A DNA stretch of 34,136 nt from Malacoraja senta (taxonomy: Eukaryota). Under the pieces are notes generated by a model. It had not been told where the DNA came from, made no database searches, and was given only the letters and a program-made list of their open reading frames with translations. A program made the translations under genes and the position numbers. Location: positions 4,004-38,139 of the forward strand of contig JAXLNO010001095.1 in NCBI GenBank assembly GCA_038087875.1. The letters are read 5' to 3'. Below, in pieces: positions 14,341 to 34,136 of the stretch (positions are counted from its first letter, which is position 1; every line of letters starts with the position of its first letter).

Positions 14341-14600
14341 GTACTTTTTAATGACTCAATGATATTTCTAGGATTTGGTGCAGTGAATCCATAATGTTTA
14401 ACTTTTTTTTTTCCACTGAATTCACAATTTTCAAATATCTGATCATCAGAAACATTTAACAACAGCACAAAGGCAAGTTGACAGTGGTGACTGTCGAGGC
14501 ATTTCAGGTGTAGCTGCTGCCTTATCCTACTTGAGATCGATCATTTCTTCAAGCCCAATACCTTTACTAGCAACAGTTCATCACAATGTTTCCATCTTAC

Positions 14601-14708
14601 CTCTCCTCTTTTTTCTCCACCAAACAATTACTGCCAAGGCAATAGCCAGCAATATCAGCACACACACGGCAATAAGGCCTATGTGCCTGTCTTTCTTCCC
14701 ATTTCATT
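14601..14708 (-). CDS. Transmembrane exon of the MHC class I-like gene, with an in-frame TGA as its first complete codon
   Basis: Acceptor ccttatttttcag|, donor GAG|gtaaga; 108 nt, phase 1-1; reads (E)*NGKKDRHIGLIAVCVLILLAIALAVIVWWRKKRR (hydrophobic segment plus basic stop-transfer). TGA at 14704-14706. Confidence 0.85.
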
Positions 14709-14769
14709 CTGAAAAATAAGGATGCATAATTTTACAAATCAATTGCTAAGCTGTGCAGCTAAATAGATT

Positions 14770-17090: not shown

Positions 17091-17320
17091 GAGGAAAGAT
17101 TCATTATTTATTTAAACATACCTTTCATGGATATCAGTTCCACCACTGAGAATCCCAAATACTCCTTCATTGTATATTAGTTATTTATTTACTTACTTTT
17201 AATAAATTTTCTGTTGACAAAGTCTTCTGCTCATGTGGAGAGTGGGTGCTGATTACGTGATTACTTAGAGCAACACCACTAAACAAAGAAAGTTTAAGCA
17301 TCTTGGAATATGGGATGTAG

Positions 17321-18365
17321 TAGCAATGTCACAAAATTTTGAGATTTTAAAAATCAAGTCTGTAATTTATCCCATCAGATAAAGCATAAAAGGAAGTTTA
17401 ATTTGACACCTAATTCACTTTTATATCTTCAGTATTAAAAAAGTTAGGCAATTTTCATACTCGGAAATTAACATCTTGTTCCCTATTGCTTTTCCATTGA
17501 CTTATCACAAAAGCTGTGATCAAGGACAGTCAAAAGCCCATAACTTTCTTAAAAATTAAGAGAACTTAATGAAATTTTCAGTTATTATAGATTGAAGCAT
17601 TCTGAAACAAATATGAAACAATCTTACTTGGATGACCTGAAATTAAAGCATATAATTAGTTAGTTACCCAATTGTAGTTAATTACAAAATTCAATTACTA
17701 GATCTAAATATCTATCCATTTCTTAAGAAAAAGTTAACATTTTTAAAAAGCCTAAGTGTCCAAATAACATTCACACAAGAATTCACAATATAACATGATT
17801 TTTAAATCTCATTGTCATTAATTTATTGGCCAAATGGAAGGAATTTAGTGTTTAAATCCTGTAAATTAATGGCCATTTAAATCATCTTGCGTGTGGGATT
17901 TTGTGGAACGCGCTGGTTTGGAACGCTGCGGTTGCACTGAATTAAACCCCAATATCGGCAGGAAAAATACTGCCGGTTGGTATATTTAAATAATCACATT
18001 TTCCCAACTTGAAATTTTTATTAAAGGCATCCTAAGAAGCAAGTTTATATGAAAAACTAAATGGTGTACCTTGCCTTGTTCCATGCGTGAAATCCGTCCC
18101 CGTTGTCGGCGTTTACGCCATTTGAAGATGATTTTAATTTTACTCCAACAATTAAATTATAAAGCGCTAATATTAATAAACTTAATAAAACGGCAGTCGA
18201 AGCGATTTTTCTTCATCAACTATTTAGCCTGTTCAAGATCGTTTAGAACAGGCTGCCGAAATATCGCATTTTAAACCCGCCCCCCCTCTCAAAGGCGCCA
18301 AAGTCGCGCACACGGGAAGTGACAGAACTGCAGCACCGCTGAAAGTAAGTTTTGTAACATACCTA
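17321..18365. mobile_element. Non-autonomous TIR DNA transposon (~1045 bp), TAG...CTA termini
   Basis: TIRs TAGCAATGTCACAAAA / TTTTGTAACATACCTA (13/16); flanking direct repeat GATGTAG (17314-17320, 18366-18372), extendable to 8 bp GATGTAGT if the left end is shifted by 1. Confidence 0.8.
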
Positions 18366-18440
18366 GATGTAGTCACAATGATTAAAATGGAAACAACAAA
18401 AGATAATGATTATCTATGAAAGAATATTTAACGTTCTTAC

Positions 18441-18707
18441 CCCAGATGATGGTCTTCCCACCGGGCAGGCTGCTGTGATCGACATGACAGGAATATTGTT
18501 TCCCATCATACGGATCATACTCAAGGACAGACCTTAGATGATATGTTCCATCGTTGTTGGGTATGACCCCAGAAGATTTCGTCTCAGAGACATGTTGACC
18601 ATTCTGCAACCAGCTGACATTGATGGCCGGTGGGTAAAATCCAAACACAGTGCAGTACAGGACTGAATGATCATCAGGGCGGGCAGCGAGAGTGACCTCA
18701 GGGGAAA
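18441..18707 (-). CDS. Ig C1-set exon of an MHC class I-like heavy chain (alpha3-like domain)
   Basis: Acceptor cttgtag|, donor GGG|gtaaga; 267 nt, phase 1-1, open: xSPEVTLAARPDDHSVLYCTVFGFYPPAINVSWLQNGQHVSETKSSGVIPNNDGTYHLRSVLEYDPYDGKQYSCHVDHSSLPGGKTIIW, with C1 hallmarks C-x3-GFYP-x-I-x-V-x-W, PNxDGTY, YSCxVxHSSL and terminal W. Confidence 0.93.
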
Positions 18708-18829
18708 CTACAAGCCAGTAAGATGGTTATTTTCACCTTCAGTAAAACGTGCACAGTCACCCACCACAAAATATTCTTCAGTCTACTACAACCACCAAGT
18801 TACTGCCACATCTGCCCCATTTTGCCTCT

Positions 18830-19215
18830 TTCGTCACCATCAACCAACCACGTGGTTTAAAAGGGATCGTACCCTCCCTGTTAAGACAGTACACAAGAAA
18901 GTTTGGAAGGACGTACCATTAAATTCAGGAACAGCTTCTTCCCCACTGTTATTGGACTACTGAATGATTCTCATGTAAGATAAGATGTTGCCCTGATCTT
19001 CCAACCAATCTCATTGTGATCCTTGCAACTCTTTTTGATCTGCACTTGCTCTGTAACTGTAATGCTATGATATTGTAACCCGATATTCTGCACTCTGAGT
19101 ATTTTTCTCTTTGCTCTGATCTACTTGTGGATGGCTTGATTGCACATGTGTAGTATGATCTGATTGGATAACACAGACAAACTTTTGACTATATCTCAGT
19201 TCACGTGACAATAAT
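18830..19215 (+). mobile_element. Rex1/Babar- or L2-like LINE 3' end
   Basis: gtaccattaaattcaggaacagcttcttcccc...tttcactatatctcagttcacgtgacaataataaac-type tail; the same tail type recurs at ~24120-24250 and ~25170-25345. Confidence 0.5.
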
Positions 19216-19749
19216 AAACTAATACCAATGGCAAATCATTTCACTAGGGCATATTATTGACAATAATAAATAATTGACAAGTTACGAAATGAGGGTCCAT
19301 TGGGGAGGGGACAAGCTTAAAATTGGCAGTATTTTCTCTCCTCTTCAATAAGAGATAAAAGGGACCAGTCATTTGTTTACAAAATCTCTTTTTGCAGAGA
19401 GTGGTCAGTCTCTGGCGCTCTCGACCCCAGAGATTTGTGAAGACAAAATCATTGGAAGTATTTAATGTGGCGGTAGTTAAACTTTTGAAAGATTGGAGAA
19501 TTGAGTGCAATGAGGAACTGGCACCGAACAGGAGTTGATGCCTGAGGAACGTCAGCCATGGTCATATTGAATGATGGGCAGGTTAGAGGACCAAATGGCT
19601 TACTCGGAAACTTGATAACCGAGGAGAAAATCAGGCTTCTGAATAGAAACATAGAAACATAGAAAAATAGAAAATAGGTGCAGGAGTAGGCCATTCGGCC
19701 CTTCGAGCCTGCACTGCCATTCGATATGATCATGGCTGATCATCCAACT

Positions 19750-22700
19750 CAGTATCCTGTACCTGCTTTCTCTCCATACCGCCTGATCCCTATAGCCACA
19801 AGGGCCACATCTAACTCCCTCTTAAATATAGCCAATGAACTGGCCTCAACTACCTTCTGTGGCAGAGAATTCCAGAGATTCACCACTCTCTGTGTGAAAA
19901 ATGTTTTCCTCATCTCGGTCCTAAAAGATTTCCCCCTTATTCTTAAACTGTGACCCCTTGTTCTGGACTTCCCCAACATCGGGAACAATTTCCTGCATCT
20001 AGCCTGTCCAACCCCTTAAGAATTCTGTACGTTTCTATAAGATCCCCCCTCAATCTTCTAAATTCTAGCGAGTACAAACCGAGTCTATCCAGTCTTTCTT
20101 CATATGAAAGTCCTGACATCCCAGGAATCAGTCTGGTGAACCTTCTCTATACTCCCTCTATGGCAAGAATGTCTTTCCTCAGATTAGGAGACCAAAACTG
20201 TACGCAATACTACAGGTGTGGTCTCACCAAGACCCTGTACAACTGCAGTAGAACATCCCTGCTCCTATACTCAAATCCTTTTGCTATGAATGCTAACATA
20301 CCATTCGCCTTCTTCACTGCCTGCTGCACCTGCATGCCTACTTTTAATGACTGGTGTACCATGACACCCAGGTCTCGTTGTATCTCCCCTTTTCCTAATC
20401 AGCCACCATTCAGATAATAGTCTACTTTCCTGTTTTTTGCCACCAAAGTGGATAACCTCACATTTATCCACATTATACTGCATCTGCCATGCATTTGTCC
20501 ACTCACGCAGCCTATCCAAGTCACCTTGCAGCCTCCGAGCATCCTCCTCACAGCTAACACTGCCCCCCAGCTTCGTGTCATCCGCAAACTTGGAGATGAT
20601 GCATTCAATTCCCTCGTCCAAATCATTAATATATATCGTAAATAGCTGGGGTCCTAGCACTGAGCCTTGCGGTACTCCACTAGTCACTGCCTGCCATTGT
20701 GAAAAGGACCCGTTTACTCCTACTCTTTGCTTCCTGTCTGCCAGCCAGTTCTCTATCCACATCAATACTGAACACCCAATACCGTGTGCTTTAAGTTTGT
20801 ATACTAATCTCTTATGTGGGACCTTGTCAAAATCCTTCTGAAAGTCCAGATATAACACATCCACTGGTTCTCCCTTATCCACTCTACTATTTACATCTTC
20901 GAAAAATTCTATAAGATTCGTCAGACATGATTTACCTTTCATAAATCCATGCTGACTTTGTCCAATGATTTCACCACTTTCCAAATGTGCTGCTATCCCA
21001 TCTTTAATAACTGATTCTAGCAGTTTCCCCACTACCGACGTTAGACTAACTGGTCTGTAATTCCCCGTTTTCTCTCTCCCACCCTTTTTAAAAAGTGGGG
21101 TTACATTATCTACCCTCCAATCCTCAGGAACTACTCCAGAATCTAAAGCGTTTTGAAAAATTATCACTAATGCATTCACTACTTCTGGGGCTACTTCCTT
21201 AAGTACTCTGGTATGCAGCCTATCTGGCCCTGGGGATTTATCGGCCTTTAATCCATTCAATTTACCTAACACCACTTCCCGGCTAACCTGGATTTCACTC
21301 AGTTCCTCCATCTCATTTGACCCCCGGTCCCCTGCTATTTCCGGCAGATTATTTATGTCTTCCTTAGTGAAGACAGAACCAAAGTAGTTATCAATTGGTC
21401 TGCCATGTCCTTGTTCTCCATGATCAATTCACCTGTTTCTGACTGCAAGGGACCTACACTTGTTTTAACTAATCTTTTTCTTTTCACATATCTATAAAAG
21501 CTTTTGCAGTCAGTTTTTATGTTCCCTGCCAGTTTTCTTTCATAATCTATCTTCCCTTTCCTAATTAAGCTCTTTGTCCTCCTCTGATGGACTCTGAATT
21601 TCTCCCAGTCCTCTGGTAGGCTGCTTTTTCTGGCTAATTTGTACGCTTCATCTTTTGTTTTGATACTATCCCTGATTTCCCTTGTTATCCATGGATGCAC
21701 TACCTTCCCTGATTTATTTGTTTGCCAAACTGGGATGAACAATTGTTGTAGTTCATCCATGCATTCTTTAAATGCCTTCCATTGCATATCTACCGTCAAC
21801 CCATTAAGAATCAATTGCCAGTCTATCTTGGCCAATTCACTTCTCATACCCTCAAAGTTACCTTTCTTTAAGTTCAGGACCCTTGTTTCTGAATTAACAA
21901 TGTCACTCTCCATCCTAATGAAGAACTCAACCATATTATGGTCACTCTTGCCCAAGGGGCCACGCACAACAAGACTGCTAACTAACCCTTCCTCATTACT
22001 CAATACCCAATCTAGAATAGCCTGCTCTCTCGTTGGTTCCTCTACATGTTGGTTTAGAAAACTATCCCGCATACATTCCAAGAAATCCTCTTCCTCAGCA
22101 CCCTTGCCAATTTGATTCACCCAATCTATATGTAGATTGAAGTCACCCATTATAACTGTTTTACCTTTGTTGCACGCATTTCTAATTTCCTGTTTGATGC
22201 CATCCCCAAGTCCACTACTACTGTTAGGTGGCCTGTACACAACTCCCACTAGCGTTTTCTGCACCTTAGTGTTTTGCAGCTCTACCCATATCGATTCCAC
22301 ATCCTCCAAGCTAATGTCCTTCCTTTCTATTGCGTTAATCTGCTCTCTAACCAGCAACGCTACCCCACCTCCTTTCCCTTTCTGTCTATCCCTCCTGAAT
22401 ATTGAATATCCCTGGATGTTCAGCTCCCAGCCTTGGTTACCCTGGAACCATGTCTCCGTGATCCCAACTATATCATAGTCATTAATAGCTATCAGCACAT
22501 TCAACTCACCCACCTTATTACGAATGCTCCTTGCATTGAGACACAAAGCATTCAGGCTTGTTTTTACAACACTCTTACCCCTTATACAATTATGTTGAAA
22601 AGTGGCCCTTTTTGATTTTTGCCCTGGATTTGTCTGCCTGCCACTTTTACTTTTCACCTTGCTACCTATTGCTTCTACCCTCATTTTACACCCCTCAGTC

Positions 22701-22765
22701 TCTACGCTCACACATTTAAGAAACCTTTTCCCTTTAACTCCATCCTCAACTATCCCATTCGACAC
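19750..22765 (-). pseudogene. CR1 ORF2 (AP endonuclease + reverse transcriptase), frameshifted
   Basis: LCLNARSIRNK, GITETW, GDFN, GKSDH (APE); NYRPVSLTSVVGKLLE, QHGF, YLDFQK, SGVPQGSVLGPQLF, KFADD (RT); frameshifts near 21330 and 20280. Confidence 0.92.
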
Positions 22766-23701
22766 CCCACCCCCTTATTCAGTTTAAAACCACCCGTGTA
22801 GCAGTGGCAAACCTGCCTGCCAGAATGCTTGTCCCCACCTGTAAGATGCAATCCGTCCCTTTTGTACAGTTCCCTTTTACTCCAAAACAGATCCCAGTGA
22901 TCTAAGAATCTAAATCCCTGCCCCGTGCACCAGTTCCTCAGCCACACATTCAGGTCCCGTATCTCCCTGTTCCTGCTCTCGCCAGCACGAGGAACTGGAA
23001 GCAAACCGGAGATAACAACCCTGGAGGTCCGGCTTTTCAGCATTTTTCCGAGGTCTCTAAAGTCACTCTGCAGAATATTCATCCCCTTCTTTCCGACATC
23101 GTTTGTGCCGACATGCACTACCACTTCCGGCTGTTCACCTTCGCCCTTGAGGATTTTCTGCACTCTGTCCGTGACATCCTGGATCCTGGCACCAGGAAGG
23201 CAGCACACCATCCTCGAATCCCGTCTGTTGCAGCAGAAACCCGTCCGTACCTCTCACAATGGAGTCTCCCACTACAATGGCGTTGCCTGACTTTGGCCTT
23301 TTTGGTTTTGGCTCAACAGCCCCATTCGCATCGCAAGCCAGTCTGCCGCTCAGTGTTAAAACGTCTTCTGTCCCGACAGCTTCTAAGTGAGTGAACCTGT
23401 TCACAAGTGGTACAACACCCGGGGACGTGTGCATTCCAAGCTTCCCTCCCTTTCTCACTGTCTCCCACCTTCTCTCTTCCAGTACCTTAGGGGTAACAAT
23501 ATTACTGTAGAACTTGTCGAGGAACGACTCCGTTTCTCGGACAAACCTGAGGTCATTCACTTGCTTCTCCAGTTCCCCAACACGGTCCTTCAGGAGCTGT
23601 ACCTGGATGCACTTGTCACATTTGTAGCAGCCAGAGGCACCAGCAGTGTCCTTGACCTCCCACATACTGCAAGCATCACACTGAATCAGCTTGCCTGACA
23701 T
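22750..23701 (-). pseudogene. CR1 ORF1 (Cys-rich zinc-finger/coiled coil + SGNH/GDSL esterase-like domain), frameshifted
   Basis: CDACSMW...CDKCIQVQLLKDRVGELE, IVVGDSIVRG, VHVGTND, DGLH; frameshift near 23200. Confidence 0.85.
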
Positions 23702-24269
23702 CTTCTTCTTTCGTCTCTCCCTCTGCAGTGTTTTGCGTAGCCTTCTCTCCTCAGCCTCCTCGCCGAAGACTCTCGAGCCAAAGACTCACACTTTTCTCAC
23801 AGGGCACTTCCCTCACATGGCACTTCCCTCACAACGCCGCCCCCTCACTGCCACTCCCTAAGAGCAGTCTTGCTTATATTGACTGATAAGTTGCCTACTT
23901 TATCAATTTACAATCGTTCCATAAGCTAGGGTTCTGTCCAATTGACCACTACCCCATTACAGACAGTGGACTTTGTTTATGGAACTATGTAGGAAGGAAC
24001 TGTAGATGATGGTTTAAACTGCAGATAGACACAAAATGCTCGAGTAACTCAACGGGTCAGGCAGCATCTCTGGAGAGAAGGAATGTGTCACGTTTTGTGT
24101 CGAAACACATATCTAATGGAACTGGTGTGCTACATTGCTGAGAACTATATGCCACACTCTGTACCTTCCCCTTTGCTCTACGTACAGTACTTGAGTTGAC
24201 TTGATCATATATATGTATGTTGTTATCTCATCCAATTGGATAGCATGCAACTGTACCTGGAAAGTTGCT

Positions 24270-24759: not shown

Positions 24760-26024
24760 CAGGAATCGAAATTAGCGGTTGCCCGGTGCCCGTGGCAACT
24801 TACAGTCCCGCAGGGCAACCTAAAAGCCATGCCATTTTGCCCGGCTTGGCAAGCAACCGGGACACCTGCCCGCCATCCGTGTCCGGGTCTCGGGTCTCCG
24901 CTCAGCTCTCGGCTCTCGGCTCTCGGGTCTCCGCTCGGCAAGGCCGGCCGCCGAGCACTGCACATGCGCACTGCCACGGCAACTGGTCGGCGTCGGCCAC
25001 TTTCTCCCTCCCTTTGCATTGTGGGAGTTCTGGCCGCCATTGCTCTCCGGTCGCTGCCTCAGCTGGAGTAACTCTTGCTTCTTGGTTTCCAGGTCCTCCA
25101 AAAATATTCGAAATGGAATTTAAACTGGTGGACCCACCACCACCAAACTCCAAACTGAAAAATAACAGCCTATTGCATTTTATCCGTTTATTTATTGTGT
25201 ATATATATGGTCTATAGTATGGAGACACACTGAACTTTTATCTCCTGTTCTGTATTATGTTTACATATTCTGTTGTGCTGCAGCAAGCAAGAATTTCATT
25301 GTCCTATCTGGGACACATGACAATAAAACTCTCTTGACTCTTGACTTGGACTTAAGCAAAAAAGGGTTCTTGGGGGGAAAAAAACTACCTTAAATTTAGT
25401 TGCATCTGGTTGGGTACCTATAGTAGGGTGACAACTATTCCATGCTTTAATTGTGCGGGGGAACTCCATGGAGCAGCCAGCATCTCTGGATAGAAAAAAT
25501 TGGGTGACATTTCTGGTAGAAACCCTTCTTTACATTTCCTCTGGTTTTAGTGTTTTTAGTTTAATTTAAAGATACAGTGTGGAAGCAGGCCCTTCGTCCC
25601 ACTGAGTCCACGCCGACCACCGATCACCCGTACTCTAGTTCTATCCCACACATCAGCAACGTAAGTCAAGACTGTTTTATTCTCTCACGTCCCAGTTAGA
25701 ACAATGAAATCCTTACTTGCAGCAGCACAACAGAATATGTAAACATAGTACTCTGTAAACAATGTTATAAACGAGAAAACAAAACTCCACACAGACAGCA
25801 CCCATATTCAGGATCAATTCTGGGTCTCTGGCAATATTAGGCAGCCAATTTATGGGCAATGTACTGCCCCAATAGCCTTGAACTGAATTAAAGCATACAG
25901 TAGCTGTAAAGGGGGACATAGCGTCACTTAGAGATTTAAGACTGAAAATGGATAGTTTCTTTTTTTTAGTAACCAAACCAAAGTTATAAACGTATCATTT
26001 TTTGTGTGTTGGAAAATAAAATAT

Positions 26025-26250
26025 AATGGCACAGCTGGTGGATTTGCTGCCTCACACGCCAGAGACCTGTGTTCAATCCTGTTCTCGGGCACTGTCTGTG
26101 TTGAATTTGCACATTCTCCCTGCAATCATGTGGGTTTCCTCCCACATCCCAAAGACGCATTGGCTTTGTAGGTTAACCTGTCTCTGTAAAATTGCCCCTA
26201 ATGTGCAGGAGTGGGTGAGGAAAGTGGGATAACAGAACTTGTGTGAATGG
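26025..26250 (+). mobile_element. tRNA-derived SINE inside the hAT-like element
   Basis: tggcacagctggtggatttgctgcctcac...tgttcaatcctg...tttcctcccacatcccaaagacg. Confidence 0.65.
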
Positions 26251-26254
26251 GTAG

Positions 26255-26700
26255 ACAAAAATGCTGGAAAAACTCAGCAGGTGAGGCAGCATCTATGGAG
26301 CAAAGGAAAAAGGCGACGTTTCGGGTCGAGACCCTTCTTCAGACTGATGTCGGGAGGGGTGGGGGGGGGAAAGAAAGGAAGAGGCGGAGACAGTAGGCTG
26401 TGGGAGAGCTGAGAATGGGAGGCGGGGGGAGGGAGAAAGCAAGGACTATCTGAAATTGGAGAAGCCAATGTTCATACCGCTGGGGTGTAAACTACCCAAG
26501 CAAAATATGAGGTGCTGTTCCTCCAATTTGTGGTGGGCCTCACTCTGGCCATGGAGGAGGCCCAGGACAGAAAGGTCGGATTCGGAATGAGAGGGGGAGT
26601 TGAAGTGCTGAGCCACCGGGAGATCAAGTTGGTTATTGCGAACTGAGTGGAGGTGTTGTGCGAAGCGATCGCCATGCCTGCGCTTGGTCTCACCGAGGTT
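26255..26700 (-). mobile_element. Penelope-like element 3' fragment (GIY-YIG C-terminus + pLTR)
   Basis: GETKRRHGDRFAQHLHSVR...PVAQHFNSPSHS...KLEEQHLIFCLGSLHPSGMN, followed by the terminal repeat. Confidence 0.85.
26311..26345 (-). ncRNA. Minimal type I hammerhead ribozyme motif in the Penelope pLTR
   Basis: Minus strand: CTGAAGA-A-GGGTC-TC-GACCC-GAAA-C-GTC; intact CUGANGA and GAAA boxes, 5-bp stem II, palindromic ACGT stem III, GUC cleavage triplet. Confidence 0.7.
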
Positions 26701-27759
26701 GATCATACGCTAAATAACCATATTTTTGTTTGGAAGTGGAAAGAGATAATATAAATTGCATTCATTGCAACGTGTAAACAGAGATGAGATACTGTATTGT
26801 AATTTTGCTGCATGTCATTGTGGTATATATCATGTCTTCATTGGTGAATATGTTCAGTTTGTGACTTTATTTGAAGCAGAAATAATATGTGAATGTTTCA
26901 TTGACCATAATTCTGACGTGTATCTACGCACTTCATCCGAGCACATTATCGCACGCGTCATGCAAGCCATCTTAAATGACAACCTAAGCTGTCATTTGGC
27001 AACCTAAAAAGCTGCCGAGGTTGCCCGGCTGGCAACAGGGGAAAAAAGTTAAGCGAGAGCCCTGCAACACTATCTCTTGTGTTGTTCCGTCTCTGGAACT
27101 AAGTGGTAGCTGCGCTTAACTGTTGTAGCATAACTGTTTATGCTGAACAGTTTATGAAAAAAGTCTAAAAAGGATTAAAAAACAAGTGATTCCAGCATGT
27201 TGAAAGATAATTGGGACTGATACGTAATGGGTGGCACAGCGACACAATTCCAGTGACGAGGGTTCGATCACATCTTGAAACAGAAAATCTTAAACTGAGG
27301 CAGGCGCCTCTACTTCATCAATCCAGTGCTGTTATGGCACTGGGCCTTAACATGAGAATATGAGAAATTGGGTATTTCCTTGGGGCAAAATCAGACTTTT
27401 CAGAGACTTGGAAGCTGCAAGATAGTCCTGAAATGTGGTGGATCTCTGCGTGCTTTTCCAGAAGAGGACGAATTGTACTTATGTACAGTATGACTTGACT
27501 GGAGAGAATGCAGAACAACCATTTCACTGCAGATAGACACAAAAAGCTGGAGTAACTCAGTGGGACAGGCAACATCTCTGGAGAGAAGGGACGGGGTGTC
27601 CAGCATCTGCTGTTCCATCCAAACCATTTCACTGCATCTCTGCATGCATGAAATTAAACAGAGTTATATAAAATGCAGCACATACTGCAGTACTCAAGTA
27701 GGTCAGGCTGTCCTGATTTTGCAGGTGGATAACTTAACTGTAATATAAAAAAAACACAA

Positions 27760-29179: not shown

Positions 29180-29470
29180 CTCCCTGTCAAGCAGGGATGT
29201 AATGCTGAGGTTCTATAAGGCACCAGTCAAGCCACATTTGGAGCACTGTGAGCAATTTTGGGCACCATATCTGAGGAAGGATGTGCTGGCTCTATAGATG
29301 GTCCAGAGGAGGTGTACAAGAATGATCCCAGGAATTAATGGGTTAACATATGATGAGCATTTGATGGCTGTGGACCTGTACTCGCTGGATTTTAGAAGAA
29401 TAAGGGGGGACCTCATTGAATCATACCAAATAGTGAAAAGCTTGGATAGAGTGGATGTGGTGAGGATCAT
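29180..29470 (+). mobile_element. CR1 RT C-terminal fragment
   Basis: FYKAPVKPHLEHCEQFWAPYLRKDVLAL, then VQRRCTRMIPG...LYSLDFRRIRGDLIE. Confidence 0.8.
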
Positions 29471-33385: not shown

Positions 33386-34136
33386 AGGTAGAGAGAGAGA
33401 GACAGAGAGAGAGAGATAGATAGAGAAATAGAGAGAGATAGACAGACAGCGAGAGACAGAGACAGGGATGGAGAAATATGAGGCAGATACAGAGATAGAG
33501 AGAGAGAGTGAGACAGAGAAAGTGAGAGAAAGACAGAAAGATAGAGATAGAGAAAGCGATGGAGAGATAGAGGGACAGAGAGGGAGGGACAGAGAGTGAG
33601 ACGGNNNNNNNNNNNNNNNNNNNNNNNNNNNNNNNNNNNNNNNNNNNNNNNNNNNNNNNNNNNNNNNNNNNNNNNNNNNNNNNNNNNNNNNNNNNNNNNN
33701 NNNNNNNNNNNNNNNNNNNNNNNNNNNNNNNNNNNNNNNNNNNNNNNNNNNNNNNNNNNNNNNNNNNNNNNNNGAAATGGAGAGAGACAGAGAGAAATAG
33801 AGATAGAGAGAGAGTGGAAGAAAGAGAGAGAGACAGAGAGAGAGACAGAGAGAGACAGTCAGTGAGAGGGAGTGAGACAGAGAGAGAGGCAGAAAGAGAG
33901 AGTGGGGGAGAGAGAGAGAAAGAGAGAGACACAGAGAGAGAGAGAAGGAGACAGAGAGAGAGAACCAGAGAGAGAAACAGAGAGAGACATAGAGAGGGGC
34001 AGAGAGATAGGGAGAGAGAGGCAGAGAGAGAGTAAGAAAGACAGAGAGAGAGACAGAGAGAGAAACAGAGCAAGAGAGAGACAGAGAGAAACAGAGAGAG
34101 AGGGAGACAGAGAGAGAGAGGGAGAGCAAAGCAAGA
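33385..34136. repeat. GA-rich degenerate microsatellite (AG/AGAC/AGAT), interrupted by a gap
   Basis: Low-complexity purine tract; source of the spurious SL-rich and ER-rich ORFs. Confidence 0.95.
33605..33773. other. Assembly gap (169 N)
   Basis: Run of N. Confidence 1.

Follow-up and report, generated by a model that had tools for sequence, protein, structure and literature searches.

The in-frame TGA that interrupts the class I-like gene copy described here, just before its membrane anchor, is an ordinary lesion, and nothing points to a regulated soluble form or to the use of an alternative acceptor. The explanation we favor, with a probability of about 0.8, is that this copy is a plain pseudogene, i.e., a 5'-truncated member of a very large MHC-Ib family that has suffered a nonsense change of its own. 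The copy lies on the minus strand of the window, by which we mean the whole analyzed stretch of 34,136 nt (C1095:4004–38139; the assembly comprises 1.94 Gb in 6182 contigs). The window would contain the 3' half of one copy of an MHC-Ib gene that is amplified in this skate-like cartilaginous fish, i.e., the exons for alpha3, for the connecting peptide and transmembrane (TM) helix, and for the tail with the 3' UTR. The family is likely to evolve by birth and death, with units of about 100 kb having been copied repeatedly and in both orientations, and its norm, to which paralogues, orthologues of two skate species and a spliced mRNA conform, is to use the canonical acceptor and to continue with E-G-N-(G/R)-K-K-D-R-H and then the TM helix. 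In the window copy alone, a G to T transversion would have turned the TM exon's second full codon, which specifies Gly, into a stop.

Exons 4 to 6 are the only ones held by the window. Exon 4 (18707–18441, minus strand; 267 nt, phase 1 to 1) is intact and encodes the alpha3 or C1-set Ig domain (Pfam C1-set, E = 3.3e-20 at 18442–18705, minus). Its product, (V)SPEVTLAARPDDHSVLYCTVFGFYPPAINVSWLQNG...CHVDHSSLPGGKTIIW, ends in ...GGKTIIW, after which come a single G and the donor GTAAGA. The best PDB matches of this exon are class I-type alpha3 domains (E = 8e-35 against residues 182–268 of 9ch4_A), its protein sequence is the same in 18 other copies, and it maps to positions 691–957 of the mRNA of a relative, L074, which is described below. 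Exon 5 (14708–14601, minus strand; 108 nt), which encodes the connecting peptide, the TM helix and a basic anchor, maps to positions 957–1065 of L074. It is preceded by tttttcAG and starts G|AA TGA AAT GGG AAG AAA GAC AGG CAC, which gives W-E-stop-NGKKDRH. The TGA (14704–14706, minus strand) stands where paralogues and orthologues have GGA (Gly), and downstream of it the frame is open through NGKKDRH-IGLIAVCVLILLAIALAVIVWW-RKKRR, i.e., through a hydrophobic helix of 22 residues and then WW-RKKRR, as far as the donor GTAAGA at 14600. The last exon starts its coding part at 4230 (4190–4230, minus strand; L074 from position 1064) and reads D-YQNIQPKQNVHC-stop, with the TAA at 4192–4190, the same as the family consensus. 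It continues into a 3' UTR (1443–4189, minus strand) that is recognizable by homology to the mRNA of the relative at 80–88% identity. The continuous frame through connecting peptide, TM segment and tail that is expected of an MHC class I gene is broken at 14706–14704 in the window copy and open in other copies. The sequence-only reading had described a canonical junction W-E-TGA that ends the protein at the end of the ectodomain, with the TM segment, the basic cluster, the splice sites and the Ig exon otherwise intact, and the assembly confirms this description: outside the TGA the frame is open and the GTAAGA donors are present. It had also placed the stop about 100 nt before the next junction; the distance from the TGA to the 3' end of exon 5 is 103 nt, and its remark on nonsense-mediated decay (NMD) is arithmetically right.

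The TGA occurs in this copy alone. A pattern search in which the critical base was left free found the start of exon 5 110 times in the genome. Among 100 of these 110 matches listed, the copy on C1095 is the sole one with AATGAA and the others mostly have AAGGAA (Gly), the exceptions being four with GTA, one with ATGGAA and two in which the acceptor is mutated to AC. A search with the TGA version found the window as the only exact match, and all 86 copies with one mismatch carry G (87 copies of the 23-nt core). When 30 copies were aligned over 180 nt, two bases were seen to be private to the window, one of which is the T. Outside this genome, the orthologues from Amblyraja radiata (P0154) and Leucoraja erinacea (P0156) and the mRNA-derived P0160 and P0161 read IIW-EGN(G/R)KKDRH-IGLIAVCVL...RRDYQNI. 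As judged from these comparisons the TGA is a private GGA to TGA (G to T transversion) nonsense change in one copy of the family. Recoding of the TGA, as selenocysteine or by read-through, was considered and set aside because paralogues and orthologues have a plain Gly codon at this position. Individual copies deviate from the family at the same site in other ways: the acceptor AG is AC at C530:36474–36507 and C972:35563–35596, the Gly codon is changed to Val (GGA to GTA) in four copies (C944, two on C1226, and C2904), and the split codon is changed from AA to AT in one (C368:68138).

The window copy apparently also lacks the 5' half of a class I gene. It is collinear with C4831:118633–140790 at 92–97% identity, except for three window-specific insertions, i.e., a LINE with endonuclease and RT reading frames in intron 3 (19645–23912, minus strand; absent from the paralogue on C4831), a 2.3 kb element (24761–27064, an insertion relative to C4831), and a very high-copy repeat of about 1 kb in intron 4 (17320–18365, minus strand; absent from C4831 and of very high contig depth). 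The homology with full-length paralogues ends on the 5' side at 29442 (minus strand), which corresponds to C4831:118633, 2 kb downstream of the alpha2 exon there. Upstream of 29442 there are repeats and N runs up to the end of the contig at window position 34136, 4.7 kb further on. When an orthologue was used as tblastn query, only its residues 204–328 were matched in the window, the alpha1 fragment of 9ch4 found no match in the window, and alpha1 and alpha2 exons were found neither in the window nor elsewhere on C1095. The breakpoint is shared: 400 nt across the junction at 29442 recur at 91–96% identity in about 29 other copies. The contigs of these copies were compared with genome-wide exon lists for alpha2 (125 candidates) and alpha1 (142 candidates), all scored, and in these inventories no alpha1 or alpha2 exon adjoins the shared junction in any of the about 29 copies, including those on C2757, C1729, C6177, C5132, and C1166, which have 165–487 kb of contig upstream. 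As the copies that share the junction are without alpha1 and alpha2, the window copy is apparently one of a subfamily whose units begin within intron 3 and consist of exons 4–6 only, and the truncation is probably older than the stop. The family as such does have alpha1 and alpha2 upstream in the same gene (C4831; Pfam MHC_I, E = 6e-12), and the window copy does not. Since it has no leader, alpha1 or alpha2, no class I heavy chain would come from it whatever the stop does, and it is presumably not productively transcribed. The proposal of a recent null allele or young pseudogene, one of several put forward from the sequence alone, is supported, as comparison of the codon with paralogues and other species finds Gly to be the norm, TGA once in the genome and a sense codon in the other copies seen. 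Further disabling lesions, which had been named as the sign of a plain pseudogene, are probably present as well, i.e., the missing leader, alpha1 and alpha2 and a breakpoint that is shared with a subfamily.

One point counts against a plain pseudogene, namely that the conservation of the Ig exon is unexpected in a long-dead fragment. Compared with other copies, the Ig exon of the window differs at 2–5 of its 267 bases and at 0–1 amino acids, against 3–4.4% (mismatches alone) in the flanking introns, and its three differences from the copy on C4831 are all synonymous. Across copies (L001–L030; window 18441–19640) the Ig exons are 3–5 times more conserved than the introns (0–2% vs. 0.6–4.4%), with most exon differences being synonymous; the intron divergence comes from a comparison of 900 nt and from pairwise BLAST. 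The same excess is found between other copies, including those that look 5'-truncated, and a rough estimate of omega, made from the protein identities of all copies that share the junction, which average about 98%, is about 0.3. The TM exon differs at the rate of the introns (4/108). The conservation of the Ig exon points to an inactivation that is recent, to gene conversion, or to truncated units that are in some use; exon-directed conversion and recurrent truncation are likewise possible.

Other explanations than a plain pseudogene have to be weighed against these observations. The copy could be full-length, with its leader, alpha1 and alpha2 exons beyond the end of the contig, and the TGA a null allele, fixed or still segregating, of a transcribed gene that is intact in other respects, the mRNA of which would be an NMD target or the source of a little TM-less chain. 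The contig does stop 4.7 kb above the breakpoint, in repeats and N runs, and the intact state of the Ig, TM and tail exons and their splice sites, together with an Ig exon much better conserved than the introns, is what such a gene would show. It is nevertheless unlikely, as alpha2 lies only 2 kb upstream of the end of homology in full copies and as about 29 copies share the junction without adjoining alpha2 or alpha1, even where hundreds of kb of upstream sequence are at hand. A base-call or consensus error, with GGA as the true codon and no stop at all, is very unlikely. In its favor, polishing is difficult in paralogue-rich regions, the T is found in no independent read set, and the contigs that cover 14706 read the G allele. 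These contigs, however, also lack the other private variants of the copy (e.g., 14721 and 14700), as expected of a collapsed paralogue consensus. In the two DNA-like public runs of the likely source species, which were searched as contigs, a single contig of very high depth covers 14706, and contigs of this kind drop rare variants and collapse paralogues; this contig agrees with the paralogues at all three positions, 14706, 14700, and 14721, and therefore represents a collapsed family consensus and is silent on the window copy. Moreover, mis-polishing normally moves a base towards the consensus and not away from it, and private intron divergence of about 4% combined with conserved exons is a biological pattern and not one of random error. 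The T is probably a true base.

The two remaining alternatives are a rescue by splicing and a dedicated secreted chain. A switch of acceptor and a secreted chain had been raised in the sequence-only reading, which noted that a second AG, giving an exon start at 14690, would keep the frame. This inner AG (14691–14692, minus strand) is present 18 nt inside exon 5, in the coding sequence AAG AAA G|AC, and the joined codon G|AC specifies D. Use of it would bypass the stop and yield a membrane form minus six residues, and skipping of the in-frame 108-nt exon would yield a TM-less form; both events preserve the frame, as all exons are in phase 1, and only 18 nt separate the canonical from the inner AG. 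Rescue by splicing is all the same extremely unlikely. The canonical AG (14709–14710, minus strand) follows a pyrimidine tract, with 14 pyrimidines in the 18 bases upstream compared with 2 in 18 for the inner AG, which lies in a purine-rich stretch that is plain coding sequence in the 110 copies and is kept as K-K-D in all of them. The canonical acceptor is, furthermore, the one used in a relative. L074 is a 3455-nt contig from a related skate, and it must be a spliced mRNA because a frame of 334 codons runs through it uninterrupted. It maps exactly to the exon borders in the window (Ig 18707–18441, TM 14708–14601, last exon 4230 to about 1443) and places the 5' exons on the paralogue on C4831 (alpha1 95846–96108, alpha2 116357–116630), and its Ig/TM junction ...ATCATCTGGG|AAGGAAATGGG (...TGGG|AAGGAAATGGG) is window 18441|14708. 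Among the orthologue proteins and L074 none is without the six codons that precede the inner AG, so that this one mRNA and the orthologues have only the canonical junction and not a pair of alternative 3' splice sites. In an RNA-like run of a relative the contigs cover exons only and part from the window sequence at the donor (14601) and the acceptor (about 18709), and the Ig-to-TM joint is absent among the matches listed. The window copy would also have no 5' exons to splice from. With an inner AG in purine-rich coding sequence and the canonical site in the mRNA of the relative, the proposed splice switch is not borne out. A dedicated secreted class I-like chain, with the stop placed at the end of the ectodomain, is just as improbable. 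The stop does lie two codons past the Ig domain, where engineered soluble constructs end, and the 9ch4 construct ends at the same W. It is, however, kept in none of the more than 100 paralogues and in none of the orthologues, and the latter as well as L074 carry the TM segment. In addition, the TM and tail exons are without sign of long-relaxed constraint, the tail coding sequence being the consensus, and the alpha1/alpha2 ectodomain exons are missing in the copy, so the secreted chain, as a designed form, is no better supported than the splice switch.

The preferred reading, a pseudogene in an amplified family, is in keeping with the many lesions that the other copies have. The genome contains about 105 Ig, 110 TM, 118 tail, 72 alpha1, and 52 alpha2 exons of the family, which are spread over more than 90 contigs at distances of 60–130 kb and in either orientation (for example C4831:95846–137000, C831:170131–211065, and C5255:107773–154334). 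Most copies are on small unplaced contigs and one is on C9, a large scaffold of about 40.6 Mb, where other class I-like exons lie nearby. In complete copies the distance from alpha1 to alpha2 is 20 kb and that from alpha2 to the Ig exon is 7 kb, and the TM-to-tail intron is 10 kb. The structural classes are complete, alpha2-frameshifted, alpha2-absent, and 5'-truncated: the alpha2 exon is intact in about 33 copies, whereas about 15 have in common a frameshift and a TGA in it (e.g., on C5255, C6101, C246, and C1895), those on C1769, C3509, C3982, C5735, C5151, C2228, C5457, and C2050 have alpha1 20–25 kb upstream of the Ig exon and no alpha2, and about 30 are 5'-truncated. Other lesions are a TAG in the Ig exon of several copies and a broken acceptor in two. 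Lesions scattered across copies in this way are the usual pattern of a birth-and-death multigene family. The amino-acid identity among the about 105 Ig exon copies is 93–100%, the tail D-YQNIQPKQNVHC is the same in 89 of the copies listed, and its YQNI is retained in the skate orthologues. The tail of CD1b also carries a Y-x-x-hydrophobic sorting motif, and the YQNI tail would fit a CD1-like mode with endosomal sorting. A second and compact class I-like family, of about 40% identity (alpha1, alpha2, and Ig), is co-amplified 73–90 kb upstream of many copies (e.g., C4831:46555–50293, C5255:52697–56430, and C831:99106–107077), and many of its Ig exons have one TAG. W-category MHC genes encode class II-type two-domain chains (PMC8713811). 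A W-category or class II-like gene, with one membrane-distal domain, one Ig domain and no alpha2, was rejected as a description of the family, as full copies have an alpha2 exon 7 kb ahead of the Ig exon and all orthologues have alpha2 too, and as alpha1 accompanies alpha2 in full-length paralogues and in orthologues.

By far the nearest solved structure is chain A of PDB 9ch4 ("Ig-like domain-containing protein," an ectodomain of 268 residues). It matches the whole ectodomain of the skate orthologue P0154 (residues 27–292) with E = 8.6e-118 and the alpha2 exon of a paralogue with E = 2.6e-34. The next PDB matches are MR1 and the class I molecules of chicken, fish, and shark, with E values of about 1e-48 at best, and CD1 and classical class I are also far behind 9ch4. 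An identity to the family of about 60–65%, estimated by eye, makes 9ch4 a homologue from another species or lineage and not the same gene. The window copy corresponds to its alpha3 part only, plus the stop, and is without the groove domains. A literature search for the code 9CH4 gave unrelated matches only. In a profile-free search of 1.84 billion proteins with the alpha2 exon of a paralogue, three cluster representatives were found below E = 1e-30, and these are class I-like proteins of L. erinacea, A. radiata, and a sawshark. The family is thus closely related to a solved elasmobranch class I-like chain, and below this E value its relatives are skate and sawshark representatives only.

The same lineage includes RefSeq proteins named "class I histocompatibility antigen, F10 alpha chain-like" from A. 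radiata (XP_032898133.1) and L. erinacea (XP_055521885.1). The skate RefSeq proteins have about 90% amino-acid identity per exon to the family, and the coding exons have about 94–95% nucleotide identity to the mRNA of the relative. Exon borders, connecting peptide EGN(G/R)KKDRH, TM helix and tail RRDYQNI(P/Q)PNQNVPC are as in the family, and the complete skate chains (341 residues) end ...GGKTIIW-EGN(G/R)KKDRH-IGLIAVCVLI(L/S)LAIGLAVIVWW-RK(K/N)RR-DYQNI(P/Q)PNQNVPC. They differ from the window copy in being complete and in having Gly where it has the stop. A further difference is in number, as the skate species have a handful of distinct sequences in the protein collection compared with more than 100 copies in this genome.

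Two expanded families, UBA and UEA, are described in sharks (PMC12562908), and UEA is very large (PMC12562908; PMC10751288). UFA and UGA are MHC-linked, CD1-like lineages of sharks and rays, with a crystal structure and lipid ligands, and are reported as single or low copy (PMC12562908; PMC10751288). Like UFA and UGA, the present family has a CD1-like YQNI tail and one dominant relative in the PDB; unlike them, it has at least 105–118 copies of its 3' exons. As for UEA, we know of no report that detects it in rays. It may be that the family represents an undescribed expansion of a CD1-like-tailed MHC-Ib lineage, with 9ch4 as its nearest structure, units of about 100 kb present more than 100 times, exons 3–5 times more conserved than introns, and the stop as one "death" within it, but this proposal is tentative and on balance somewhat doubtful. 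If it is true, a large part of the array would be in use or would be homogenized by conversion from copies that are. Families of MHC class I genes that evolve by birth and death leave pseudogenes behind, and the window copy resembles these in combining a private nonsense change with a truncation among lesioned paralogues. It differs from true soluble class I genes in that its stop is not conserved. A pseudolocus, Sasa-UCA, and a soluble molecule, Sasa-ULA, have both been described (PMC2846915).

The stop alone is of little import, and its analysis strikes off one proposed soluble or splice-switched class I-like molecule. It does call for caution in annotation, as the family has more than 100 copies that are nearly identical and the introns of which are very long. 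Because of this, readings made from a single window, such as "lacks alpha2," "soluble form," or "mixed class I/II Ig domain," need to be checked against paralogues. The size of the family and its conserved exons are a more interesting lead than the stop and merit the attention of specialists.

Two minor observations concern gene models in L. erinacea. The RefSeq models P0152, P0153, and P0155, of 576–663 residues, are in one 90% cluster with both the class I-like chain and a GPR139-like receptor, which suggests read-through or merged models of neighboring genes, and in gene models of this species the receptor is seen fused to the class I-like gene; a GPR139-like receptor was found neither in the window nor in C4831:90000–150000 (60 kb). 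Read-through of the donor of the Ig exon in the window (18382–18440, minus strand) gives GKNVKYSFIDNHYLLLFPF and then a stop, and this is the same as the C-terminus of the 311-residue model XP_055486429.1 (P0157), which represents either a TM-less isoform with a retained intron or an artefact of annotating a short contig.
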